A stretch of DNA of 63,573 nucleotides, the filler included, from Octopus bimaculoides (lineage: Eukaryota), in NCBI RefSeq assembly GCF_001194135.2. It is 6 parts of 6 records of this genome, joined end to end, with 100 filler letters (N's around TTAATTAATTAA, not from the genome) between each part and the next. Parts side by side here need not be neighbours in the genome. Positions count along the whole stretch, not along the records: positions 5,393 to 28,645 come from NC_068983.1; 5 more parts are not named here. One strand, given 5' to 3'. A program made the translations under genes and the position numbers. Under the pieces are notes generated by a model, which searched no databases, was not told where the DNA came from, and was given only the letters and a program-made list of their open reading frames with translations. Below, piece by piece: positions 6,320-28,758 of the stretch (position 1 is the first letter of the stretch; each line of letters starts with the position of its first letter).

Positions 6320-7171
6320 TAAACATATGGATGGATGGATGTATGTATACGTATATATTATATCTTATTTAAAACTATTGTGCAAAAACATGAATGTGCA
6401 CGATACAGTATCGCAACATTGTCATGTGTGCCACATCGCACAACCCAATTAAAAAAAATTCAGTCGTTTCGACCTGTCCACACATTTTAAAATTCATTTC
6501 CATAAATTTCTGTCATGTGAAACATCCAGTAGTACTTGAAATCGTGCTGAACGCAATTTAATCTGATATTTGGAATTTACTCTCAATCTGCTCATGTGTA
6601 TCCTCAGCAAACCGCTATTTTAACCAAACCATGGATCGGTTTACGTAATCATCTTTATTTTACATTCGGATACGCTTAAATCACGTTCTATTCACTTCTA
6701 ATACAAAGTGAGTATAAGGCAAATGTATATTTTCGTTTTAAAACATCAAACAAAATCTATATTCTATAGCTCCTGCGTGGTTGAATGTGGTCAAATTTAA
6801 CAAAATTTGTGCATAAGTATGTAATGAAAATAGTTCAATTCCAGCAATATCCAGAGTGATAAAACGTGTGAGATTGAAGGATCATATAAATATAGAAAAC
6901 ACCATCACCACCAACAACAACAGAATCAAGTAGAATGCACTTATTTTAAAGATTGAATATTATTTTAATTTTATAATTATGCCTTCTATTAGCTATGGGA
7001 ATATAAAACAAATCAGAAACCTGGTAAAAAATACAAAATAGGATTGTTTCACTTACACTGTTATAGTTGTGTAGTTAAATATGAAATATATTCCATTCCA
7101 TTTAAGACAAATTACGCATGCATGTATATGTTTTATGTAGGAGAAAGCTTATGATAGGGAGTACTTTGATA

Positions 7172-8653
7172 TTACAATTTATGACACATCAAAGCGCAAC
7201 ATGTTCCAGTGTAAGGCACAAAAGATACTTCAGATGTTTTAGCTTTCAAACGTACTCTGACGCAATCAAGCAAGTCACACGTTATCCATGTACAATGTCC
7301 GTCACGGTACCCAAAAAATTCGCAAGAACTGTTTTTGGCACAAACACGCATTGATGTTCTATTTCTGAACATAAGGTTATTAGCTCTATTCAAGTATACT
7401 TTATTCTTATAGTTACAGCTTGGTTTTGGTGTCAAAGTACCATTAGCACACGTCACATTCTCGTTAGATTTCTTCCAGTAATTAAGGTGACATGAATAAG
7501 TAATATTCGTATTTTCTGGGACTCTGCTTCCAAACGGAAGATATTGCAGCGTTTCTCCATTTCGGTAGCTATATAATCCAAGCTCGGGTAACAGTTGGCA
7601 GTTCTTAACACAACTTGGAAGGTTTCCAGTCCATGTTCCATTTTCTAAACAGGTTCTTTTAGAATCTCCCAACAAAGTTTCTCCTGCTGAACAGCTATAT
7701 TCAATAACTGAAAAATTTTGTGACAAAATAAAATTTAATCCATGCAGTTTCTCAATTTTACACGTTTTTCTGCACTGTAGGTTTGGGTACCATTCACCCG
7801 ACAAGCATTGAACGACTCCATACGTGACAGGAATGAAAGATCGTTTGCAAGAATATAACACTTTCTCTCCTTCATTGATTAAGGTTCTTGGTTTTAATAT
7901 TGTACCTTCAGAAATAGTCACCACTCTGCCAGCAATTTCAGGCACAACACAATTCAAAGTGCAAACAGGTGTCGGAAAGTTCCAGCTACCGTCTTGAAGA
8001 CAAGTTAATACAGATTCACCTTTCACATTATATGGTTGCGTGCAACTGAAATGAATTGTTTCGTTAATTTTAACTTCATTTGTATTGTTTATATTGCCAT
8101 GTTTGGGTGGAAGCGGTGGCAGACATTTAGTACTTTCACAAACTGGTGGTGGGGACGACCACTGTTTAGTTTCTTGACAACGTATTGAACTGTTTCCTCG
8201 CAAAAAATAACCAGAAAAGCAGGTAAAGTAAACAACAGAGTTATATGTGTATGCAACATTTGTCATGAAACTATTAGCAGGTTTATGAAAAATTGGGCAG
8301 GCTGTTAACTTACATTGTATAACTTCATACGTCCATTTACCATTCCGACAAACAATCTCGGTCGTATTGCCTCGGTTTGCTTTAAAATATCGGTTGCATT
8401 TTTGTTCCAGATATATCTTTTGTTCTTCCCATTTTATGATATATTGTATTCTACTGTTGTTTAATTCCGGTAAAGAACTGCAGTTTAAGAAATCTATCAC
8501 TTGTTTAAAAAACCAAGGAGTAAAGTTTTTGTCAATTGAACTTCTATGACTATATTCCGACAAAATATTTTGCATAATACTATTAAATGCATTATTCTCA
8601 CTTTTCACAGTGAATATGATTAAAAAAAGAAAATAGAAATATGTGAATATCAT
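7172..8653 (-). CDS. Secreted Sushi/CCP (SCR) repeat protein, 493 aa, single exon: signal peptide, six CCP modules, Cys-rich C-terminal domain
   Basis: Uninterrupted ORF from ATG (8653-8651) to TAA (7174-7172). Hydrophobic N-terminus MIFTYFYFLFLIIFTVKS. Six C-x-C-x-C-x-W-x-C modules (e.g. CPIFHKPANS...YFTCFSGYFLRGNSSIRCQETKQWSSPPPVC; module 6 lacks the Trp). At least 13 N-x-S/T sequons and no transmembrane segment. Confidence 0.92.
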   Translation of the reverse strand: MIFTYFYFLFLIIFTVKSENNAFNSIMQNILSEYSHRSSIDKNFTPWFFKQVIDFLNCSSLPELNNSRIQYIIKWEEQKIYLEQKCNRYFKANRGNTTEIVCRNGKWTYEVIQCKLTACPIFHKPANSFMTNVAYTYNSVVYFTCFSGYFLRGNSSIRCQETKQWSSPPPVCESTKCLPPLPPKHGNINNTNEVKINETIHFSCTQPYNVKGESVLTCLQDGSWNFPTPVCTLNCVVPEIAGRVVTISEGTILKPRTLINEGEKVLYSCKRSFIPVTYGVVQCLSGEWYPNLQCRKTCKIEKLHGLNFILSQNFSVIEYSCSAGETLLGDSKRTCLENGTWTGNLPSCVKNCQLLPELGLYSYRNGETLQYLPFGSRVPENTNITYSCHLNYWKKSNENVTCANGTLTPKPSCNYKNKVYLNRANNLMFRNRTSMRVCAKNSSCEFFGYRDGHCTWITCDLLDCVRVRLKAKTSEVSFVPYTGTCCALMCHKL

Positions 8654-8859
8654 TTTCTGAATTTTGATGGTAAACTTTACGTAAATAATTTACAAAACTA
8701 TATTGCCGAATGAATAGCTGTAAGTCTTTTACAGTCGAGTTAGTAGGCAGTTCGTCGATTCCACAAGTGTATCTTATAAAAATATTTTCATTTATATACT
8801 TCTTTAATTTTGAAATTAAGGCATATGGCATTGCTTAGGGAGAGAATTAGAGATATGAA

Positions 8860-8897
8860 TATTTATAGGAGGTGGGGTTTAAAGATTAGATGATTGG
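8860..8897 (-). promoter_or_regulatory. CCAAT box + TATA box upstream of the CCP gene
   Basis: Minus-strand CCAAT at 8897-8893 and TATAAATA at 8867-8860, about 207 nt upstream of the ATG. Both motifs and their spacing are retained in the paralog (12274-12311). Confidence 0.6.
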
Positions 8898-9045
8898 TTA
8901 TTTTAATTTTTTATAGTATAATGTGGCTTAGATTATAGCAGAACAGCACAGGTCATGTAGTACAGTAGTAAGCGTATTTACATAAATTACATACATTGAA
9001 TTAGCTTCACACATACACACACACAGACACACACAGACACACACA

Positions 9046-9112
<67 letters not shown>

Positions 9113-9617
9113 CATGTGTTGAAACATATGGCTTGAAAATTTAAAATATTAATGTCTGCAGTGCAAATAAAATAAATACACAGAGTGCAGAGAAAATCAA
9201 GCACGCATAAATATCCACAAGATAAAAACTGTATGTCTAAAGTGAATTGTATGTCTAAATTGAGTAAATTTCATACACGTTAGTTACTTTATTGGTCTGA
9301 AAGATGGCACTGAGTGGTCGCAAGTTGACGGCGGCAGGAGAAACATTGTCCAGATTTTTTTAGGCTGACTAAAGGAAAAACTCAGCTTAATGTTTAGTGC
9401 CTTCTAGGAATGGCAGACATAATTTGGGTGATGAGAGGAAGCAAAATACAAAAGTCGAGAGTTCCTGAGTGAAAGTAGAACGAGATCAACAAGCCAGGCT
9501 GTAAAGAAGGCAAGCAAGTCAAAGAATTAAAGCTCACTGTAGTCGTGTGAGAGAGAGAGAGGGGGGAGGAGAGAGGGAGAAAGAGAGAAGGGAGAGGAGG
9601 GAAGGAGAGGAGGCAGG

Positions 9618-9661
<44 letters not shown>

Positions 9662-9699
9662 CATGAAGGTAGAGAGACAGAGTTATACATCGTGTCCTT

Positions 9700-10300
9700 T
9701 CGTCAGTGGTTTGAAGAATGTCACGATGGTCAGTCGGTTGATCATTTTCTTGGAAGCGATCTTGTAATTTCGTATGCACGCTATCAACACCGTCTTAACT
9801 GCAGAAACAATATGACATAATGGCTTTCACTTGTGCCTTGTAAGTAGTTAAGCCCTTGTTAGGGTCTGGAAGATTTTCTTTACCAGTAGGCCAATCTTTG
9901 TGATGTAATTTTGACTATACTAAAGAAATACGTTCCCTGAGAGAGATTCTCAGTGATGTGAAAGGCCTAGTAGTTGAAACTATTAGTTTTATCCTTCATG
10001 TTTAGTGTGTATTTTACGAAATTATTTGAAGTGATTTTGACAACATTAGAAAATGGTTTCGATGTCTCTGTTTATGGAGTTAATGCAAGTTTGGCGTGAG
10101 GTTTTTACATTGCGTATCAATGATATCAGACTGTGAAAGATTTAAGAGGAATAAAGCTTGCTGAAGCTGACAGCAAATACATCGATGTTGTTCTGGAAAA
10201 AGAACGTTGAAAGCAAAATCGAAATTGGGGTTGTCCAAAATTTTATAGCGTATGTCACAGAGACGCCCATCAGTATGTCTCCGATGTTAAATTTTGACTT
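9700..10300 (-). mobile_element. Degenerate Penelope-like (GIY-YIG) fragment
   Basis: The minus strand gives remnants such as TSESI..YC and KLQDRFQE. Homologous to 16910-17560. Confidence 0.45.
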
Positions 10301-10849
10301 CAAGGCACCGATCTATAGTGTTGTATGCCGATAAGAACAGCCCTCGAGTTTGCCAAACTCTATCCTTACTCCCTATTCAGACTTATACACAAACTCTCGC
10401 ACGCGGTTAACTATCACCATTGCTACGGGTCCTCCACATCGCTACCAACCGCCATTCTAGCTTCGCAACTACTGATCCAAGAGATTTTCTACCATTCATC
10501 ATGACATCTATATCCAAACTGGTGATGATATTACTATTTTTGCGGTTCAATTGCAAGGCGTCTATTAAGGGTTTCATTAACAGAAGTGTTAAATTCAAGG
10601 ATGACAGATTGTATTATCTTACTGTTATGTCTGTCGTTCAACTGTTCAATAAACTGATTATTGAGTATGTTTATTAATTGCATCAAATGAGAATATTCTT
10701 TCTCTCTTCTTTCTTTTAATCCTAACCATTAAGATTTAACCGTATTTTTAGTCTCTAAAAAGATTACCACTTTCACTACACGATGTCGTATCAGCTTCCC
10801 TCTAAAAGGATCCAGTCTCTCAATTGTAGTACTCCAAAGAACCACCCGC

Positions 10850-11400
10850 ACGCTATTCCATCGAATCCCAAAGTACTACACGGGCATGATCCCCAATGCC
10901 TTCAAGGAATGGTATACGCAGCATATGTATTCGCTTAGATGCATGGAAAGAGACAATTCCATCTCTTTGTCTCGTTTTTTCTACAGCCGAAATTGGGGGT
11001 GTCCAAGTGTTTATAAAGTATGGCCGAGAGACAACCATTCACACACAACACATGACGAAATTGGATACTTGGGCTAATTCAGTTACCTGAGGGTGCCAGA
11101 AAATAGTTTAAGAACAAGTACCGCTGATGTACCGCTGATGTACCGCTGATGTACCGCTGATGTACCGCTGATGTACCGCTGGTGGTACATCATCTAGCTA
11201 CGCCACTGTAGAGCGGTAACATCGTGTCAAATTTCAGCATCGAGTGTGTGATAATGGGTGTCGCTCCAACTCTCCCAATTTCGCTTTTCTTTTCAACATT
11301 CTTCTTCCAAATCATCAACGGCATATTTACTGTCACTCCCAACAACGTCCACTACTAAACAATTCTTCCAATCTGACGAATGGATGGGATGTACCACACC
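10850..11400 (+). mobile_element. Degenerate Penelope-like composite with internal inverted repeat
   Basis: The plus strand gives KYYTGMIPNAFKEWYTQH (GIY-YIG-like). 10988-11090 and 11220-11285 are inverted copies of one segment. The whole unit matches 18050-17390 on the opposite strand. Confidence 0.5.
11118..11183. repeat. 11-bp tandem repeat (GTACCGCTGAT) x5 plus one variant
   Basis: Read directly from the sequence. Confidence 0.95.
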
Positions 11401-11445
11401 ATCACTCTTCTCTCTCACGTCCTCTCACCCCATATCTCTCTTTCA

Positions 11446-11481
<36 letters not shown>

Positions 11482-11543
11482 TTCATTCTCTCTCTCTTTC
11501 GCTGCGTCCACATTCCTCTCTCTCGCCCTCTTTATCTCCCAAC

Positions 11544-11575
<32 letters not shown>

Positions 11576-12013
11576 AAAACACGACTAAAGCTAGCCATAC
11601 TCCTCTGACCTACCTGCCTCGCGGCCTGGTTAGTTCGTCTCGATTTACGTCCACTCAGACTCTTCAGATTTATGTATTTCGCTTCCCCTCGTCACCTAAA
11701 TTATGTCCATCATTTCTAGCTGGCACTAAACATTATGCTCAGCTATTCCATTCTTCATCCTACAGGAATTTTCAACAATGATTTTCCTGTCGCTGCGAAC
11801 TTGCAAAATCTCAGAACCTTCTTTCAAACCAACGCAATAAAAAACATGTATGTATAGATTTTATCCTGCAGATAGTCATGCGCACTCGGTTTTCTCAGCA
11901 CTCTGTGGATTTATTCCATGTCCACTGGTCATATTGATATTTCAATCGTCCAGGTCCTGTTTCACCAAATGTAGAATGTGTTTGTAGGTTCGTGTGTGTG
12001 TATGTATGTGTGC

Positions 12014-12049
<36 letters not shown>

Positions 12050-12273
12050 ATTTGTGTGTGTGTGTGTATTTGTGTGTGTGTGTGCGTGTGTGTCTAATCC
12101 AATGCATGTAATTTATGTACACATGCCTACTGCTTTCTTATAATCCTAAGATTTAACCGTATTTTTAGTCTCCAAAGACTGCGTTCTTTTGGTACCTTGC
12201 TTACTGCTGTGCAACACTACTTGTGTTGTTCAGCTATAAACTAAGCCACATTTTACTATTCAAATTAAAATAG

Positions 12274-12311
12274 CCAATCAACTAATCTTCAAACCCCTCT
12301 CACTATAAATA
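12274..12311 (+). promoter_or_regulatory. CCAAT + TATA box of the paralogous copy
   Basis: CCAAT at 12274-12278 and TATAAATA at 12304-12311, homologous to 8897-8860. Confidence 0.55.
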
Positions 12312-12518
12312 TTCATGTCTCTTATCCTCTCCCTAAGCAATGTAATAAGCCTCGACTTCAAAATAAAATAAGTATATAACTGAAAAATATTTCTCTGAGA
12401 TGCAGTTGTGGAATCGACTAAAAAGTATCATTTAAAATACATCTGAACTAACAGATCTACTTTCGGAACTATAGTTTCGTAAATTTTTCACGAAAAGATT
12501 ACCATCGAAATTAAGAAA

Positions 12519-13312
12519 ATGATAGAGCAATTTATTTTCTTTCTTTAATTATATTCAGTGAAAAGAGGGCAAAGTGCATTTGATATTATGCAAAATACTC
12601 TGTCTGAATGTAGTAATACCACTACATCAGATAAAAACATTTCTCCGTGGTTTCTTAAACAAGTGATAAATTTCTTAAACTGTGGTCCTTTACCGAAATT
12701 ACTCAACAGTAGAATACAATATATCGTAAAATGGGAAGAACAAAAAATATGTCTGGAACAAAAATGCAACCGCTATCTTCAGTTGTCGAATTCAGTTCAG
12801 CAGGAGAAAAACTGTTGGGAGATTCTATAAGAAATTGTTTGAAAAATGGAACTTGGATTGGAATACTTCCAAGGTGTGTAAAAAGCTGTCTACTGTTACC
12901 CGGGTTTGGCATATACAGTAACCGATATTCACACAATTTACAATATTTTCCGTTTGGCAGCTCAATTCCACAAAATACGGAAATTACTTATTCATGTCAC
13001 CGCAATTACTCGAGGAATTCTTAAGAAAATGTTACTTGTAATAATGGTGTCTTGAATCCCAAACCAATTTGTTCATGTAGAAATGTTTGGCTGAATAAAA
13101 TGAACATTCTTCAGTACAAAAATCATTCATCAGTGTCTGTTTGTGCCACAAAATAAACTTACGTATATTTTGGTTACGTTGATATAGGTCGTGAAAAGAT
13201 AACATGCAACTACTTCGATTGTGTTACTGTGCATTTTGACAATGCCACATTAGAAATAAATTTTAGGGATTACTTTGGAGATTGTTGCGCTTTGAAGTGT
13301 AATGCATACTAA
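12519..13312 (+). pseudogene. Pseudogene paralog of the CCP-repeat gene (inverted duplicate)
   Basis: ATG at 12519 aligns with ATG 8653, and the translation matches both ends of the protein (FLKQVINFLNC...EQKCNRY; ...DCCALKCNAY*). Lesions are TAA stops at 12546, 13022 and 13154 and a 673-bp frameshifting deletion at about 12775-12780. Confidence 0.9.
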
Positions 13313-13957
13313 TATCACAGTACTTCCAACATGAAGCTATCTCTTAAACAGAAAGATATATATACATTCATAATTTGTCTTAAATGGAATGGAGCCTATT
13401 CCATATTTAACTACAGAACTATAACAAATATAAGTGAAACAATCTTATTTTGAATTTTCGCAAGGTTTCTGATTTATTTTAAAATGGCATCAATAATTGA
13501 AGACATATTTTTAAAATTAAAATAATCGTTAATATATTCCCCTTAATTCTGTTGTTGCCGTTTCTATTTTATGTTTCATGAATATGAACCTTCAGTCTCA
13601 CACGTTTTATCACACTGTATATCGCTGGAATTCAATTATTTCCATTACATACATATGCATAAATTTTGACAGGTGTGATGATATATGAATGAAGTGAATA
13701 GAACCATATTTAAGATTCAACGAGTGTGAAGTAAACATTATTACATAAATCGGGCAATAGTTTCGTTAGAAAAGCTTTGCTTGCTCTAGACATGACGGAT
13801 GTGAAACTATAGGTAAAACTCATCTTTGTAAATGTTTAATACGCGCGTATTGAGCCACAAAGTATTGAGTAATTATTAAGTTTAATGCAACGTTGTTTTT
13901 ATATAGAACTTGACGTAGATATATATGTATTTATATACAATTTGATGAAAATATATA

Positions 13958-13995
<38 letters not shown>

Positions 13996-14466
13996 GACAC
14001 AAGATGTGATCTATTTCTAGCGCATTAATTGTCCACGTTAGTGGTCGACGTCATTTTTTTTAAATGTACCTTAATCCCCTGAGATTGCAGATAATATTTC
14101 TGAATCTCTTTGATTCTTTAGATGTGCTGGCCTCCTGATAATTAATCGATATTAATTAATATATGACTAATTACCAGATTTTATAATAATATTATATANN
14201 NNNNNNNNNNNNNNNNNNNNNNNNNNNNNNNNNNNNNNNNNNNNNNNNNNNNNNNNNNNNNNNNNNNNNNNNNNNNNNNNNNNNNNNNNNNNNNNNNNNN
14301 NNNNNNNNNNNNNNNNNNNNNNNNNNNNNNNNNNNNNNNNNNNNNNNNNNNNNNNNNNNNNNNNNNNNNNNNNNNNNNNNNNNNNNNNNNNNNNNNNNNN
14401 NNATATGACCGTTGACTGAACACTATTCAATTTTTTTTCTCCGTGTTTTTCTCCTTGTCTCCGTAT

Positions 14467-14635: not shown

Positions 14636-15160
14636 CTGATGCACAAAAGGGATAGAGATGCAGGAAAAAGCCGTAAAATGTGACAACCGACGCAGACTTT
14701 GTGGAGTTCACACTGAAGATATCACCCACATCATAAGCAGTGGTCCGAAAATGTCAACACGGTATATCTACCGACCGATGAGACATGACGTTGTATCTAG
14801 GGCACTCTATAATGAAATCCGTCGGAAGGATAATCCCGAGGAGAAAGAAATAAGAAGCCACAATATAATAGAAGCCGTAGCCACTCATAGTAAAAGGGAA
14901 TACTGGTGGAACGTACCAGTGAAGACTTCAATAAAATGTAAGCACAACAGACCTGATATAATGATTTGGGATAGACAAGAGAAACTGTGTACAGTTGTGG
15001 AAATTAGCTGCCCAGCGGATATTAACGTAAAGCTGAGATCAGTGAAAAACAGAACACCTACGCTGAACTATTGAGAAATCTGCAGTTACTCTATCCAGAT
15101 TACAAGTTCAGGTTTATACCTGTAATTATTGGGCCCCTGGGATATGTAACACACTGTCTA
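14636..15160 (+). mobile_element. Non-LTR retrotransposon 3' fragment with restriction-like endonuclease (R2/NeSL/R4 type), frameshifted
   Basis: HIIS...RHDVVSRALY, HNRPDIMIWD, VVEISCP and FIPVIIGPLG match the RHD / PD..E / KY endonuclease architecture. Confidence 0.8.
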
Positions 15161-16086
15161 NNNNNNNNNNNNNNNNNNNNNNNNNNNNNNNNNNNNNNNN
15201 NNNNNNNNNNNNNNNNNNNNNNNNNNNNNNNNNNNNNNNNNNNNNNNNNNNNNNNNNNNNNNNNNNNNNNNNNNNNNNNNNNNNNNNNNNNNNNNNNNNN
15301 NNNNNNNNNNNNNNNNNNNNNNNNNNNNNNNNNNNNNNNNNNNNNNNNNNNNNNNNNNNNNNNNNNNNNNNNNNNNNNNNNNNNNNNNNNNNNNNNNNNN
15401 NNNNNNNNNNNNNNNNNNNNNNNNNNNNNNNNNNNNNNNNNNNNNNNNNNNNNNNNNNNNNNNNNNNNNNNNNNNNNNNNNNNNNNNNNNNNNNNNNNNN
15501 NNNNNNNNNNNNNNNNNNNNNNNNNNNNNNNNNNNNNNNNNNNNNNNNNNNNNNNNNNNNNNNNNNNNNNNNNNNNNNNNNNNNNNNNNNNNNNNNNNNN
15601 NNNNNNNNNNNNNNNNNNNNNNNNNNNNNNNNNNNNNNNNNNNNNNNNNNNNNNNNNNNNNNNNNNNNNNNNNNNNNNNNNNNNNNNNNNNNNNNNNNNN
15701 NNNNNNNNNNNNNNNNNNNNNNNNNNNNNNNNNNNNNNNNNNNNNNNNNNNNNNNNNNNNNNNNNNNNNNNNNNNNNNNNNNNNNNNNNNNNNNNNNNNN
15801 NNNNNNNNNNNNNNNNNNNNNNNNNNNNNNNNNNNNNNNNNNNNNNNNNNNNNNNNNNNNNNNNNNNNNNNNNNNNNNNNNNNNNNNNNNNNNNNNNNNN
15901 NNNNNNNNNNNNNNNNNNNNNNNNNNNNNNNNNNNNNNNNNNNNNNNNNNNNNNNNNNNNNNNNNNNNNNNNNNNNNNNNNNNNNNNNNNNNNNNNNNNN
16001 NNNNNNNNNNNNNNNNNNNNNNNNNNNNNNNNNNNNNNNNNNNNNNNNNNNNNNNNNNNNNNNNNNNNNNNNNNNNNNNNNNNNNN

Positions 16087-16445
16087 GTTTGTCCTTCCAT
16101 TCAACAATTATACAAATAATACAATCCTTCATTTCTTTAAAAGTTTTACCCAGCAGCTTAACTTTTGCCGATAATATTGACATCGCAACATAAACGTACA
16201 ATTTATAAACTGAGACCGCGCAAGTACTCTCTGTTGGAGTCATTCGAAACTTCTCCCTTTCAATAGTAAATATACACGAGGACTGGCCATATCAAAAGGA
16301 AAACATCACACTTCACACCTTTTAAACGTGAGCTGCAATCTGATAGATGTTTCACAACACCAAGGAAATTAGACCTTACAACACCGAAATGCATATACTT
16401 AACATGGCTAGGTAGATTAGCATCCTGAAGAGTGACCATTCTCTT
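16087..16445. repeat. Near-identical inverted copy of 22319-22674
   Basis: The reverse complement matches with only 2 mismatches seen by eye over about 356 bp. Confidence 0.9.
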
Positions 16446-16851
16446 CACCAACACAATCTTATTCCCATCTGGGACAGTCCTACTACTGTGCACAGAGACA
16501 ACCTAAACCGTGTCCAGAGAAAACCACTTGACTGACTGGTATAATTTCACTGTTTTGTAATGTTTTGTAATGATTTCTATCTCATCCGAAAAATAAGCCT
16601 GCGAAGGATGTGTGTAAATGGGGAAAAGACGTGTAACCCTGAAATATATATCTACGTATGTATAAATAGATATGTATTTACACGCACGTGCGGTCACATG
16701 TTTATGTATTTATGCTTATATATACATGTGTGTGTGTGTGTGTGTGTGTGTNNNNNNNNNNNNNNNNNNNNNNNNNNNNNNNNNNNNNNNNNNNNNNNNN
16801 NNNNNNNNNNNNNNNNNNNNNNNNNNNNNNNNNNNNNNNNNNNNNNNNNNN

Positions 16852-19316: not shown

Positions 19317-19530
19317 GGCGGCGAGCTGGCAGATTCTTTAGCACGCCGGGCGAAATGCTTTGCGGTATTTCGCTTGTCGCTACATTCCAAGTTCAAATTC
19401 AACCGTGGTCGACTTTGCCTTTCATCCTTTCGGGGTCGATGAAACAAGCAGCAGTGAAACACTGGGGTCAATATGATCGACTAGTCCCCTCCCCAAAATT
19501 TCAGACCTTCTGCCTACTGTAGAAAGGATT
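19317..19530 (+). mobile_element. tRNA-derived SINE, family 2 (central gtcgactttgcctttcatcctttcggggtcgat)
   Basis: tRNA-like head ggcggcgagctggcaga...gttcaaattc. Many copies occur in the window. Confidence 0.85.
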
Positions 19531-19540
19531 ATTTTACACT

Positions 19541-19682
<142 letters not shown>

Positions 19683-19779
19683 TAATGATAATAATATGAC
19701 AAGAAAAGAATGAATGAGACCTCGATATTATGTAAAATAGAGGAATTTATCTATTGATATATGTGACAATTATTTGGTT

Positions 19780-20899: not shown

Positions 20900-21580
20900 G
20901 GGTCTAAAGAACTTTTCCAGATAAGCCATCTTTCCATATCGCAAAGACTGCACTTTCCACTGCCGTTAGTGTAAGGCTTACACATGGCCAAGATCTTCCA
21001 GTGAATCTTATAATTGACACCTTTTTCTTTTAAGGACCATATATAAGTGAATAATTTGTTTGTTTTCTATATATGCCGGTGTCTGAAGCTTATGGTGTGA
21101 TTGTTGAACCTGGCTTTAAAATTTCCCTCATATTTCTTTGACGAAACTATGTCCTTAGTAGTTGTAGAGTTTACGGTGGCTTCATAAGTGATGGCTTCGG
21201 CCATACAAGCTCCATTTAGCGGGCACAAACTTTTAACACTGCAGGAACAGCCGGCTTCATTTTGTTGTTTTTGTTTGTTGTGTGCAATTATATTTTTAAT
21301 GTTAGTAGTAGAACTAAAACTAATTTTTAAGTTGTGCTTATTAAAGAGCTTTCTATAATTATGATTGATTGAAAAATGCCTATCAATAATGGATAAGAAA
21401 TATCTACCTATATTAAAGGTCACTTCGGGGGAGTAAGGTGGTGTGAACCAGATAATTTTCTTATTTGTATTTTTCCTTTTCTTTGTTACTGGACAGGTGT
21501 ATAGGTTATTTCCTCGCTAAAACCACTATTTTTTAGAGCTTTATTATATATATAATTAAGCAACAACACGTGTGCGGTTA
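20900..21580 (-). mobile_element. Penelope-like retroelement fragment (linker + GIY-YIG endonuclease)
   Basis: WFTPPYSP followed by ORF 21423-21067: NIGRYFLSIIDRHF...CSCSVKSLCPLNGACMAEAITYEATV...FKARFNNHTISF. Confidence 0.85.
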
Positions 21581-22318
21581 CATTGCTGAAACGTCAAACT
21601 CTGTTTTTACCGAGCGTCAAGCAGGTACATTGCTTATGCACGTCCTCTTGCTGTCCGTTAATTATATTATTTTTTGTTTTGTTAATTGATTGTTTATTTG
21701 AATTCACTATTTACTGCACACTCACATGGACCNNNNNNNNNNNNNNNNNNNNNNNNNNNNNNNNNNNNNNNNNNNNNNNNNNNNNNNNNNNNNNNNNNNN
21801 NNNNNNNNNNNNNNNNNNNNNNNNNNNNNNNNNNNNNNNNNNNNNNNNNNNNNNNNNNNNNNNNNNNNNNNNNNNNNNNNNNNNNNNNNNNNNNNNNNNN
21901 NNNNNNNNNNNNNNNNNNNNNNNNNNNNNNNNNNNNNNNNNNNNNNNNNNNNNNNNNNNNNNNNNNNNNNNNNNNNNNNNNNNNNNNNNNNNNNNNNNNN
22001 NNNNNNNNNNNNNNNNNNNNNNNNNNNNNNNNNNNNNNNNNNNNNNNNNNNNNNNNNNNNNNNNGAGTTGATCTATTTATAGCGAATTATCGGCTCCCGA
22101 AGGCTTCAGAAAAATACTCTATCACATGACCTTATTAAGGGCTGTGATTGGTCAGTTTGCGTTCTGGCGGGAACGGTTCGAAGAAGTTGCCGCTTCGAAT
22201 ATTAATCAGTCACGTGATGACAAGGAGATGGGTTCTCCGCTACGGCAGCGCTTGTTTATATTTAAATGAGAAGAATGGCGAGAGCAGTTTTGTATCTAAT
22301 GGCGATAGGTAGTTTCAG

Positions 22319-23230
22319 AGAATGGTCACTCTTCAGGAAGCTAATCTACCTAGCCATGTTAAGTATATGCATTTCGGTGTTGTAAGGTCTAATTTCCTTG
22401 GTGTTGTGAAACATCTATCAGATTGCAGCTCACGTTTAAAAGGTGTGAAGTGTGATGTTTTCCTTTTGATATGGCCAGTCCTCGTGTATATTTACTATTG
22501 AAAGGGAGAAGTTTCGAATGACTCCAACAGAGAGTACTTGCGCGGTCTCAGTTTATAAATTGTACTTTTATGTTGCGATGTCAATATTATCGGCAAAAGT
22601 TAAGCTGCTGGGTAAAACTTTTAAAGAAATGAAGGATTGTATTATTTGTATAATTGTTGAATGGAAGGACAAACAAGCCATAGATGATAAGAAATAAAGG
22701 AACGAGGGAGAAATTGAACTTTGGAGCACACCAGTATTGTTTGAGTGTGAGAAAGGAAGTTCTTCGTTAACATGCAACGGAATGGCATGATGCGATAAGA
22801 AGCTGTCAGAGCCCAAAGTCTAAGATTCGAGAAAGTACCGAAGCGTATAGACTAGGAGTTTCGAAATGACACTCCCATACCAGAAAAAGTCTGAAGCTTT
22901 GCCGGTATCAAGGGCAACGACATTGCTTTCTCAAATGGATTGTTGAACGATAAATGAGTGTCGACCTGCCACCCTAGTGGAAATGGTTCTACAGAAGAAG
23001 TGCCAGTGATTGTTGTTTGGCAACTGATGTAAGCTGATATGATTAGAAAATTGAATCCGTTTGCCGCCGAAGAGATATTTTAACCCTTGAAGATTAAAGG
23101 GAACTGTTAAGTTTAATGCGACGCAGGAGAATTGTAAAAGAAACGATGTCACAGAAGCATAGAAGTATGACGAAAATCGTGGGAACTTTATAGCAGAGCA
23201 TACTATAAAGAAATACATGTCCACACGCAT
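22319..23230. repeat. Unclassified dispersed repeat (probably a decayed retroelement, sense on minus strand)
   Basis: About 900 bp of direct homology to about 27540-28425, and an inverted near-identical part at 16087-16445. Confidence 0.75.
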
Positions 23231-23651
23231 TACATGTTTATGTATGTATGTATGTATGTATGAATGTATGTATGTATGTATGTATGTATGTATGTATGTA
23301 TGTATGTATGTCATTGTTCAGTTTTATTTCAATATTTCTTACCAGCAGAGAAAGAACCGGTTTTTAACCTAGATTCAAGGTTCCTTCATTGGAATTTCAA
23401 CATCAACAACAAGGTGTTTTTGTATGTATGTATGTATGTATGTATGTCCAGATTTGTATGTTTTATGTATGTATTCTTTTATGTATGCATATAGTTGCAT
23501 ATCTGGACATGCTAAATTGTGGGTCTTTCCAACTTCTAAGAAGATGAAATTTTAGAAATATTACTTCATTTGTGTGTAATATCTATGGTTAAAATTTCAT
23601 CAACAGCAAAAATATATGAATTTTCATGGGGATTATGGTCCTTATGCATAG

Positions 23652-26151: not shown

Positions 26152-26605
26152 NNNNNNNNNNNNNNNNNNNNNNNNNNNNNNNNNNNNNNNNNNNNNNNNN
26201 NNNNNNNNNNNNNNNNNNNNNNNNNNNNNNNNNNNNNNNNNNNNNNNNNNNNNNNNNNNNNNNNNNNNNNNNNNNNNNNNNNNNNNNNNNNNNNNNNNNN
26301 NNNNNNNNNNNNNNNNNNNNNNNNNNNNNNNNNNNNNNNNNNNNNNNNNNNNNNNNNNNNNNNNNNNNNNNNNNNNNNNNNNNNNNNNNNNNNNNNNNNN
26401 NNNNNNNNNNNNNNNNNNNNNNNNNNNNNNNNNNNNNNNNNNNNNNNNNNNNNNNNNNNNNNNNNNNNNNNNNNNNNNNNNNNNNNNNNNNNNNNNNNNN
26501 NNNNNNNNNNNNNNNNNNNNNNNNNNNNNNNNNNNNNNNNNNNNNNNNNNNNNNNNNNNNNNNNNNNNNNNNNNNNNNNNNNNNNNNNNNNNNNNNNNNN
26601 NNNNT

Positions 26606-27068: not shown

Positions 27069-27539
27069 ATATATACTTAGATATATGTTTCAGGGTTACA
27101 CTACTTTTCTTATATTCCGGGACTGGAGAAATAGGCAGTGCACACATCATTTCCAGGTTCGTAACTCTGATGAAATAGAAATCGTTAATTGTTCTCTGAA
27201 GATGTTTTAAGTCAACACTTTCAGGAGAAACATGGAGAGAGAGGACATTTCAGAGGTCGTAGCGTCTGCGAAGGAAGAACTAGGTGTAGCAGGTTATTGC
27301 GAATCTTGAGGAGTTTAGACACGGCACAACATGAAATAGAAGAGGATAGGAGACATACAGAGTGGGAGTGCTTGAGGTGAGTTGGCATGAGACCAGCCAG
27401 CAACGAGGAACTGACCCCATTATAATGGTGGCCGAAAAAACACTGTTATGCTAGTCAGTCAAGTAGCTTTCTCTGGGTACAGTGCAGAATGTCTCAGGTG
27501 CAATTGTGAGGCGTCTAGCAGTTTACTGTTCATGTTTCA

Positions 27540-27789
27540 AATGTGTGAAATGCGATGTTTTTCTTTTGATATGAGCAATCCTCGTGTATATTTACTATTG
27601 AAAGGGACAAGCTTTGCATGTCTCCAATAGAGGGAATTTGCGCAGTCACAGTTCATGGGTTTCTTTTGCAGTGTTAATATTACTGGCCAAGGATGCGTAG
27701 CCGGGGAAAATTGTTGAGGAAGAAAGGATAGTAGTGCGCGCGTAAGAGTTGAACGGAAGGGCAAAGAGGTCATAGATGATAAGAAATAG

Positions 27790-27843
<54 letters not shown>

Positions 27844-27883
27844 NNNNNNNNNNNNNNNNNNNNNNNNNNNNNNNNNNNNNNNN

Positions 27884-27933
<50 letters not shown>

Positions 27934-28425
27934 TGAAATTTAGAGCATACTAGTATTGTTTGAGTGTGATAGAGGAAGATCTCCGTCAACATGCAGCGCG
28001 ATAGTGCGGTGTGATTGGAAGCTACCTATCAGATCTCACCGTCTAAGGTCTGAGGAAGTACCGAAGCATATAGCCTGGAAGTTTCGAGATGAGACTCACA
28101 TACCAGAAAGTGTCTAAAGTTTACTGATATCAAGAGTAGCGACACAACTTTCTCAAATGCATTGGTGAATGATATATGAGTTGGACGCCTTGGTTCATAT
28201 AGTTCAACAGAAGAAGTACCAGTGATTGTTATTCGGGGAGTGACGTAAAGTGATATCATGTTTAGTAACTGAAACAATTTGCCGTTGAAGAGGTATTTTA
28301 ACCATTTCAGAATAACTGGAACTGTTAAGTTTAACGAGACACAGTGGAATTGTAAAAGAAACGAAATCACAGAAGCGTAGAAGCATGACGAAAATCGTGG
28401 GAACTTTATGAGCAGAGCATACTAT
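27540..28425. repeat. Second diverged copy of the unclassified repeat at 22319-23230
   Basis: Shared blocks such as cctcgtgtatatttactattgaaaggga and gacgaaaatcgtgggaacttta. Confidence 0.75.
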
Positions 28426-28508
28426 AAAAATATGCATATATATATGTACACGCACATACAAGTATACATGTGTGTATCTAGACACACGCGCGCGCGCGTG
28501 CACGCACA

Positions 28509-28551
<43 letters not shown>

Positions 28552-28758
28552 ACACAGATACATACGTACATACATAAATACATTCATGCGCACATGCATA
28601 CACAGACACACGCGCTCGCACACAGACATGCACATCTCTCTCTCTNNNNNNNNNNNNNNNNNNNNNNNNNNNNNNNNNNNNNNNNNNNNTTAATTAATTA
28701 ANNNNNNNNNNNNNNNNNNNNNNNNNNNNNNNNNNNNNNNNNNNNTATATATATATAT

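Follow-up and report, generated by a model that had tools for sequence, protein, structure and literature searches.

We analyzed a stretch of Octopus bimaculoides DNA from the NCBI RefSeq assembly GCF_001194135.2 (63,573 nucleotides, filler included, 6 parts joined end to end; hereafter, the window). The piece at positions 5393-28645, taken from NC_068983.1, contains an intronless gene for a protein with six CCP modules and, next to it, a pseudogene of the same family. The gene occupies positions 7172-8653 on the minus strand; its open reading frame (ORF) is unbroken from ATG to TAA and forms a complete single-exon coding sequence (CDS) of 493 codons followed by the stop codon at 7174-7172. 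The product of 493 amino acids (aa) is identical to the annotated product on chromosome CM046603.1 (98,091,469-98,092,950) of O. bimaculoides GCA_001194135.2. At the local base composition (GC content of ~0.33-0.37), stop codons have a frequency of ~0.07 per codon; therefore, by our own calculation, the probability of a 493-codon open run arising by chance is ~1e-16. The next longest N-free ORFs in the piece have at most 199 aa and are low-complexity runs. This is a real, intact and functional gene with one coding exon, which is annotated already, and the uninterrupted, intronless ORF of 1482 bp reported in a preliminary description of this DNA holds. That description missed the minus-strand orientation, the non-CCP tail with eight cysteines, and the pseudogenized paralog located 3.9 kb away in head-to-head orientation. 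Our confidence in the gene, in its membership in the family described below and in the mode of its duplication is very high.

The protein begins with a predicted signal peptide (aa 1-18, positions 8600-8653; MIFTYFYFLFLIIFTVKS followed by EN), which was recognized by hydropathy, by conservation of the VKSEN motif and by a helix predicted at residues 3-14 in the AlphaFold2 (AF2) model; its hydrophobic region, FYFLFLIIFTV, and the adjoining putative cleavage site, VKS/EN, are kept across the family. The following N-terminal region of 39 residues (aa 19-57, 8483-8599) is predicted to be helical with low confidence and has no match to a known family. Next come six CCP modules, all encoded, as is the rest of the protein, on the minus strand: CCP1 (aa 58-114, 8312-8482; Cys 58/86/102/114, Trp 107), CCP2 (aa 119-172, 8138-8299; Cys 119/145/159/172), CCP3 (aa 177-231, 7961-8125; Cys 177/204/218/231), CCP4 (aa 235-294, 7772-7951; Cys 235/269/283/294), CCP5 (aa 298-348, 7610-7762; Cys 298/321/335/348) and CCP6 (aa 352-413, 7415-7600; Cys 352/388/402/413). 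CCP4 has an atypically long first loop and low AF2 confidence. Altogether, 24 of the 32 cysteines fall into six groups of four, which are invariant in the family and separated by linkers of 3-4 residues; the consensus Trp is found in modules 1-5, and in CCP6 the one expected between Cys3 and Cys4 is replaced. The Pfam profile PF00084 (Sushi) matched six stretches of the protein with a score of 118.5 bits (cut-off 20.7; E=1.6e-34), the best of them at residues 124-172 in CCP2.

A full-length AF2 model, built from an eight-sequence family alignment, has a mean pLDDT of 68.6, with values of 70-85 for CCP2, CCP3, CCP5 and CCP6; CCP4 was modeled poorly. A Foldseek search with this model retrieved only generic CCP arrays, with E-values down to 2e-18 (factor H, beta2-glycoprotein I, CD46), and the sequence matches to solved structures were likewise CCP arrays (CR1, factor H, CR2, factor XIII B, MCP, beta2-glycoprotein I). 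The Pfam profile, the Cys/Trp pattern and the predicted beta-sandwich fold place the protein in the CCP (Sushi, SCR) superfamily. It contains 14 N-x-S/T sequons, compared to 6.8±2.3 in composition-preserving shuffles (P=0.003), and several of these are conserved: sites 154 and 313 in 9/9 relatives, site 338 in 8/9, and sites 65, 189 and 197 in 7/9. A transmembrane anchor was not found with Kyte-Doolittle hydropathy in 19-residue windows (1.53 at the N-terminus and 1.31 in the next highest window, with a usual cut-off of 1.6), and the C-terminus is not hydrophobic. Judging from these features, the protein is probably secreted and heavily N-glycosylated. Thus, the preliminary description of a secreted protein with six CCP modules, at least 13 sequons and no anchor is borne out by the six PF00084 stretches, the sequon count and the single hydrophobic segment, at the N-terminus.

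The last 80 residues (aa 414-493, positions 7175-7414, minus strand) are not part of any CCP module and contain the remaining eight cysteines (Cys 438, 444, 454, 459, 464, 485, 486 and 490). Each of these is kept in at least eight of nine relatives, whereas ~70% of the tail residues differ between lineages; the family pattern is C-x5-C-[EKN]-x-F-G-[YH] followed, further on, by CC-x3-C. Pfam searches at E<=10 with the isolated tail, with the tail of a paralog and with the N-terminal segment yielded no matches. In the full-length AF2 model, the tail is predicted to form beta strands and one short helix (pLDDT 62-85); when it was modeled alone (pLDDT 60.5), Foldseek retrieved no match in the PDB, the best E-value being 0.26. 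As far as can be told, the tail is an orphan cysteine-rich module that belongs to no known family or fold.

Full-length relatives (483-495 aa, 48-74% identity; 49-74% over the full length in a comparison with ten of them) were found only in O. bimaculoides, O. sinensis, O. vulgaris and Argonauta hians. Besides the window gene, O. bimaculoides has three members, two on the same chromosome at a distance of ~200-270 kb and one on CM046601.1; there are several members in O. sinensis, one in O. vulgaris and two in A. hians. All eight full-length members for which the locus was read have a single coding exon (the gene range equals three times the number of residues plus three). An O. sinensis protein of 390 aa annotated as "complement factor H-like" (P0009; L008:10001-11476, CM016861.1) corresponds to an uninterrupted ORF of 491 codons at its locus; its annotation splices out 101 codons, and this intron is probably spurious. 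The window protein shares all hallmarks of the family, i.e., the signal peptide ending in VKSEN, the N-terminal segment, the six CCP modules and the eight-Cys tail. The family alignment has 118 invariant columns; five tail cysteines are invariant in the default MAFFT alignment, and all eight are present in at least eight of nine sequences in the local-pair alignment.

Word-indexed searches of 5.8 billion proteins retrieved full-length relatives from Octopus and Argonauta alone, and the same type of search with a family profile found nothing new outside octopods. An exhaustive HMMER profile search of 1.84 billion representatives returned 7458 CCP proteins and was swamped by giant CCP proteins; among the best 150 of the 7458 matches (all with at least 338 bits), only family representatives matched over the full length in a single stretch. 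A word-indexed search with a profile of the tail found nothing but a fragment from O. bimaculoides, and no viral relatives were found in IMG/VR. The closest matches outside octopods (P0012-P0018, 27-31% identity) come from eukaryotic metagenome contigs with prokaryote-style gene calls and are uninformative on the parent gene or its exon structure. Within reach of these tools, the family appears to be confined to Octopoda, in agreement with the lineage-specific protein that the preliminary description had envisaged.

The annotated names of the members are inconsistent and generic: SVEP1, P-selectin(-like), complement factor H(-like) and CSMD3-like. Selectins have an N-terminal C-type lectin domain, EGF, CCP modules, a transmembrane helix and a cytoplasmic tail; SVEP1 contains VWA, EGF, pentraxin and HYR domains, CSMD proteins consist of alternating CUB and Sushi domains, and both are longer than 3000 aa. 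Lacking the domains that define these proteins, the octopus protein is neither a selectin nor an SVEP1 or CSMD protein. We rejected the "P-selectin" label since there was no match to Lectin_C or EGF at E<=1 and no transmembrane segment; likewise, SVEP1 and CSMD were rejected since only Sushi passes the Pfam cut-off and the protein has 493 aa compared to over 3000.

The pseudogene lies head to head with the gene, at positions 12519-13312 on the plus strand. It has in-frame stop codons, a frameshift and a deletion, and it retains the tail: residues 7-102 match in one frame and residues 315-491 in another, while ~212 codons in between (aa ~103-314, CCP2-4) were deleted. Inverted repeats pair their coding sequences, promoters and flanks; hence, gene and pseudogene represent opposite arms of one inverted segmental duplication (~6800-13670). 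The left arm (6801-9510) comprises the 3' flank, the gene, the promoter and upstream sequence, and the right arm (11613-13668) comprises upstream sequence, the promoter, the pseudogene and the 3' flank. The arms are 73-85% identical and enclose a central spacer of ~2.1 kb. The paired segments are 6801-6919/13550-13668 in the 3' flank, 7415-7692/12795-13072 and 8384-8579/12584-12779 in the CDS, 8785-8909/12262-12386 in the promoter region, and 9354-9510/11613-11769 further upstream.

The window gene is collinear with a two-copy O. sinensis locus (L008, or the L8 locus, whose copy with the 491-codon ORF is also called L8), with identities of 69-72% over ~1 kb upstream, ~81% in the CDS and ~79% over ~0.5 kb downstream. 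The closest match of the pseudogene is the upstream copy at that locus (88% nucleotide identity over 624 nt); the pseudogene together with its flanks is 84-90% identical to this copy, which is the level to be expected of orthologous neutral DNA. A 1:1 orthology between the window gene and L8 was rejected, as the flank identity is 69-80% compared to 85-90% for the orthologous flanks of the pseudogene. The flank identity of the window gene is below the orthologous level; therefore, it is an older paralog of L8. When the window locus was compared to the loci of three other relatives (P2, P6 and P7) using blastn, homology was limited to the stretch between ~25 nt before the ATG and CDS nucleotide 1239. 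Accordingly, the mode of duplication is not settled by the P2, P6 and P7 comparisons and is settled by the L8 locus and the inverted repeat in the window. Elsewhere in O. sinensis, two near-identical tandem genes of the family (L005:3505-4992 and 10001-11485; dS 0.01, starts 6.5 kb apart) are the product of a very recent tandem duplication.

The upstream region contains two candidate promoter elements, both on the minus strand and both kept in the window gene, the pseudogene and the two O. sinensis copies: a CCAAT box (8893-8897) and a TATAAAT box (8861-8867) located 214 nt upstream of the ATG. In the upstream alignment, the conserved block CTATAAATA, which holds TATAAAT, follows the CCAAT box by ~25 nt. 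On the same strand downstream of the gene, candidate polyadenylation signals are ATTAAA (6964-6969), 203 nt after the stop codon, and AATAAA (6654-6659), 513 nt after the stop codon. The latter is just inside the flank in common with O. sinensis L8; this shared flank extends to ~564 nt after the stop codon, and its aligned blocks break from +144 to +324. It should be noted that long (GT)n, (GA)n and (TATG)n microsatellites are present at 8964-9171, 9590-9680, 11970-12100 and 19500-19730. In the window gene, as in both O. sinensis copies, the conserved promoter block is immediately preceded by a GT tract; at the pseudogene, such a tract is found farther upstream, ~130 nt beyond the promoter block.

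Since the flanks, the CCAAT box and the TATA box are common to the paralogous copies, the window copy inherited its promoter through a DNA-level duplication. The preliminary description had interpreted the gene as a retrogene that acquired its own promoter. This interpretation does not apply to the window copy, because the inverted segmental duplication carries the promoter and the 3' flank; in addition, this copy belongs to a cluster of paralogs on the same chromosome, and its flanks are collinear with the two O. sinensis copies. Relatives that are equally intronless and already annotated occur in O. sinensis and A. hians, and by the reckoning of the preliminary description itself, they tell against the proposal. 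A retrogene origin of the window copy was thus rejected in favor of DNA-level inverted duplication, as indicated by the shared flanks and the CCAAT/TATA promoter.

The same question can be posed for the founder of the family, which could be an old processed retrogene derived from a multi-exon CCP gene before the split of Octopus and Argonauta; we regard this as doubtful, albeit a real possibility. The CDS of the window gene is intronless in an intron-rich genome, as are those of all eight full-length relatives with locus read, and one lineage (P0007) is on a different chromosome. The intronless state predates the Octopus-Argonauta split and is old enough for the poly(A) tract and target-site duplications to have eroded. 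At the window copy, a poly(A) remnant was not found adjoining the gene, the nearest run of at least eight A being 1243 nt after the stop codon; no direct repeats bracket the gene among repeats of at least 80 nt, a length range that leaves out short target-site duplications; and an intron-bearing parent with the N-terminal segment or the tail of the family was not found in searches that were not exhaustive for cephalopod genomes. For this copy, homology is not confined to the mRNA body: its collinearity with the O. sinensis copies and with the neighboring pseudogene extends ~1 kb upstream and 0.5 kb downstream. Whatever its founder, the family is a clean example of intronless genes in an intron-rich genome that were spread by DNA duplication and not by repeated retroposition.

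We compared the rates of evolution of the CCP body and the tail using pairwise Nei-Gojobori estimates of nonsynonymous (dN) and synonymous (dS) distances; the sample consisted of nine sequences, and the tail alignments are uncertain at such divergence. The dN/dS of the six-CCP body was 0.25-0.75 (0.35-0.75 among pairs of Octopus paralogs), compared to 0.9-2.45 for the tail among pairs of Octopus paralogs; in the most distant pairs, in which dS has reached saturation, the tail value was ~0.3-0.7. For each of the eight pairs tested, the ratio of nonsynonymous to synonymous differences (Nd:Sd) was higher in the tail than in the body (Fisher p=0.0001-0.04). The protein distance of the tail between lineages is 0.66-0.75 and is as large within Octopus as it is between Octopus and Argonauta.

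A sliding-window comparison revealed that the CDS is a mosaic. Nucleotides 1-450 are nearest to the L8 lineage (84-90% identity), nucleotides 450-1050 are nearest to the paralogs P2 and P6 (90-95%), and the last ~350 nt, from nucleotide 1126 to the end, are only 52-69% identical to every relative. Relative to P2/P6, the body has a synonymous distance of 0.23 and the tail one of 0.8-0.9. The mosaic structure of the CCP body suggests gene conversion. On the simplest reading of these sequence comparisons, gene conversion among members of the cluster would homogenize the body, and the tail would escape conversion and diverge quickly.

These results suggest the following scenario. The family, which is mainly clustered on one chromosome, grows and shrinks by local tandem and inverted DNA duplication, probable gene conversion and pseudogenization. 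The CCP rod is held similar among paralogs; the tail keeps its cysteine scaffold and changes most other residues. The likeliest mode of action would be that of an extracellular binding protein, with the glycosylated rod of six CCP modules as its stalk and the variable tail, held by disulfide bonds, as the part that binds the ligand. The site of action would probably be a secretion or a body fluid, such as skin mucus or hemolymph, and the most plausible role would be recognition of foreign or variable targets. A stalk with a variable binding end is proposed because of the signal peptide, the conserved sequons, the missing anchor, the CCP rod, the scaffolded variable tail, the birth-and-death cluster and the detection of a member in mucus. 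Taken as a whole, i.e., a secreted family of CCP-stalk proteins found in octopods only and using the variable tail as the binding end, this interpretation is fairly probable in our judgment; for its functional part, binding and site of action, our confidence is low to moderate.

The detection in mucus refers to A0A6P7TXA6, a family member listed in the skin-mucus proteome of O. vulgaris with one unique peptide, one peptide-spectrum match and 3% coverage (PMC10138644, Table S2 row 321). This protein (XP_029654565.1, the same as P0176) shares a 90% cluster with P0004, whose identity to the window protein is ~67%. Hemocyanin, thioester-containing proteins, CD109 and cellular proteins are present in the same proteome (PMC10138644). 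The preliminary description had offered a gland or skin secretion among its suggestions, and the mucus record lends weak support to this part of it.

Several points weigh against the stalk-and-binding-end interpretation. Only for the closest pair does the excess of dN over dS in the tail reach nominal significance (p=0.04, uncorrected); both quantities are inflated in the tail, because alignments at ~70% amino-acid distance are uncertain, and the rate of the tail may reflect relaxed constraint instead of diversifying selection. The missing fold match of the tail carries little weight, since the AF2 models of this part have only modest confidence (pLDDT 60-85). The record from mucus consists of one peptide, which comes from a paralog in another species and not from the window copy, and its source may be either skin or hemolymph, because the proteome also holds hemolymph and cellular proteins. 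The restriction to octopods is based on profile matches of at least 338 bits and on searches limited by word indexing, so that squids, cuttlefish, Nautilus and other mollusks may differ. Finally, the literature, searched by name, species and accession, yielded only the mucus proteome entry, with no paper devoted to the family and no member with a known ligand or activity.

Three other functions can be considered by analogy. First, the protein may regulate a complement-like (C3/TEP) system as factor H, CR1 or DAF do, with neighboring CCP modules that bind deposited thioester proteins. In sequence and fold, it is matched best by CR1, factor H, CR2, MCP, DAF and beta2-glycoprotein I, several members were named "complement factor H-like" by NCBI, and thioester-containing proteins and CD109 occur alongside a family member in the mucus proteome. 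However, any CCP array gives such matches, and the CR1 and factor H scores accumulate from many repeats at ~20% identity; vertebrate regulators consist of CCP modules only or of CCP modules with an anchor and have no variable eight-Cys tail; and a hypervariable end is not expected when the target is one conserved self protein. On balance, such a regulator appears distinctly unlikely.

Second, fast evolution of a tail on a conserved scaffold is compatible with a reproductive or gland-secretion protein involved in gamete recognition, the egg coat, the spermatophore or salivary secretion and venom, as rapid evolution of a single domain is typical of such proteins; the clustered, lineage-specific expansion with pseudogenes fits as well. 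Moreover, the cuttlefish SE-cephalotoxin holds Sushi modules (preprints 10.64898/2026.04.09.716377 and PMC13252362), but it also has LDL-A, TSP1 and EGF domains, all of which are absent from the octopus protein, and the only detection of the family at the protein level is in skin mucus. We consider a reproductive or glandular role quite improbable. Third, a secreted multi-CCP protein with no anchor could act in the synaptic cleft as an organizer of the LEV-9 or Hikaru genki type that clusters ligand-gated channels, although this is a matter of resemblance only. Pfam detects neither a WAP domain (LEV-9) nor an Ig domain (Hikaru genki); LEV-9 and Hikaru genki are conserved single-copy genes, whereas the octopod family is a fast-turnover cluster with a hypervariable end; and no evidence of neural expression was found, the octopus brain atlas mentioning only a gene labeled svep1, in hemocytes. 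A synaptic role is thus very improbable.

Returning to the stalk with a variable binding end, a more far-reaching version can be formulated from the same sequence data. The family could be an octopod invention for diversified recognition, in which a glycosylated CCP stalk is homogenized by conversion while the disulfide-knotted tail is driven to diversify among paralogs and among species; its members would be secreted into skin mucus or hemolymph as variable binders and would act either as humoral pattern-recognition molecules or, more speculatively, as a skin-borne cue that lets octopus suckers tell their own skin from other surfaces. In this full form, the proposal is unlikely.

Other observations in the same piece of the window concern repeats and assembly gaps. 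An inverted repeat of 358 nt (16087-16444/22317-22674) is 99% complementary, with 5.9 kb between its arms, and both arms adjoin assembly gaps (15161-16086 and 21733-22064); a young transposon bounded by terminal inverted repeats, or an artifact of the assembly, could explain it. A dispersed repeat of ~0.8-1 kb with 79-85% identity is located at 22404-23191 and 27504-28409, and also, inverted, at 16205-16357. This repeat is probably an interspersed element, and its copies yield similar spurious ORFs (22931-23314 and 28029-28635). Two further ORFs, at 14658-15074 (plus strand) and 21067-21423 (minus strand), encode Cys/His-rich, basic sequences that by eye resemble remnants of mobile elements and have no significant Pfam match. 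Runs of N, i.e., assembly gaps, are present at 14199-14402, 15161-16086, 16752-16851, 21733-22064, 26152-26604 and 27844-27883 and are the source of the long "X" ORFs in a mechanical ORF list.

The gene itself is ordinary and already annotated, and its database names (SVEP1, P-selectin, factor H-like) are misleading. What the analysis adds is modest: a coherent family, seen in octopods only, with a previously undescribed cysteine-rich C-terminal module, an intronless CDS and clustered birth-and-death evolution. It also adds the sharp contrast between the homogenized CCP body and the hypervariable tail, which is a real, albeit lightly supported, lead. If the tail is a diversifying binding site, the family would be a candidate for a lineage-specific role in immune or surface recognition; the humoral recognition molecules of cephalopods are, to our knowledge, poorly known.

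Among known systems, the RCA family (factor H, CR1/CD35, CR2, MCP/CD46 and DAF/CD55) provides the best sequence and fold matches and shares with the octopus protein the extracellular strings of N-glycosylated CCP modules with linkers of 3-4 residues. The identity is, however, generic (~17-23%), and the octopus protein differs in having an N-terminal segment, an eight-Cys tail, no anchor and an intronless CDS. We did not file it as an RCA regulator, because it does not consist of CCP modules only (39-residue N-terminal segment, 80-residue tail) and because C3b/C4b binding and decay-accelerating or cofactor activity would be judged from generic CCP likeness alone. LEV-9 of C. elegans and Hikaru genki of Drosophila are likewise secreted multi-CCP proteins with no membrane anchor, but they differ by a WAP or Ig domain and by being conserved genes of the nervous system, whereas the octopod family turns over rapidly. 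SE-cephalotoxin and DECA-CTX of cephalopod salivary glands are also secreted and carry Sushi modules (10.64898/2026.04.09.716377, PMC13252362). Unlike the octopus protein, they have ~1000 aa with LDL-A, TSP1 and EGF domains.

With regard to evolutionary mode, the FREPs of snails, the VCBPs of amphioxus and the 185/333 proteins of sea urchins are lineage-specific, clustered families of secreted proteins that combine constant and fast-evolving parts. The likeness is one of logic only: the domains are unrelated, and the octopod family is known from sequences with no sign of somatic diversification, inducibility or pathogen binding. With regard to architecture, beta2-glycoprotein I is a soluble glycoprotein of a few CCP modules that binds its ligand with its last part, which deviates from the CCP consensus, and its Foldseek E-value to the octopus model is ~1e-16; TM-scores are low (0.23-0.36), and there is no sequence relation beyond the CCP modules. 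Its binding end is an aberrant fifth CCP module with a lysine-rich loop, whereas the octopus protein has a separate module of 80 residues after a normal sixth CCP. In the C4b-binding protein (C4BP), a CCP stalk is followed by a short, Cys-containing, non-CCP segment at the C-terminus; this segment is an amphipathic helix that oligomerizes the chains, in contrast to the octopus tail, which has eight cysteines, is hypervariable and is predicted to be rich in beta strands. By analogy, the octopus protein may work most like such soluble CCP-stalk proteins with a specialized C-terminal end, beta2-glycoprotein I and C4BP, with an end module that is unrelated to theirs.

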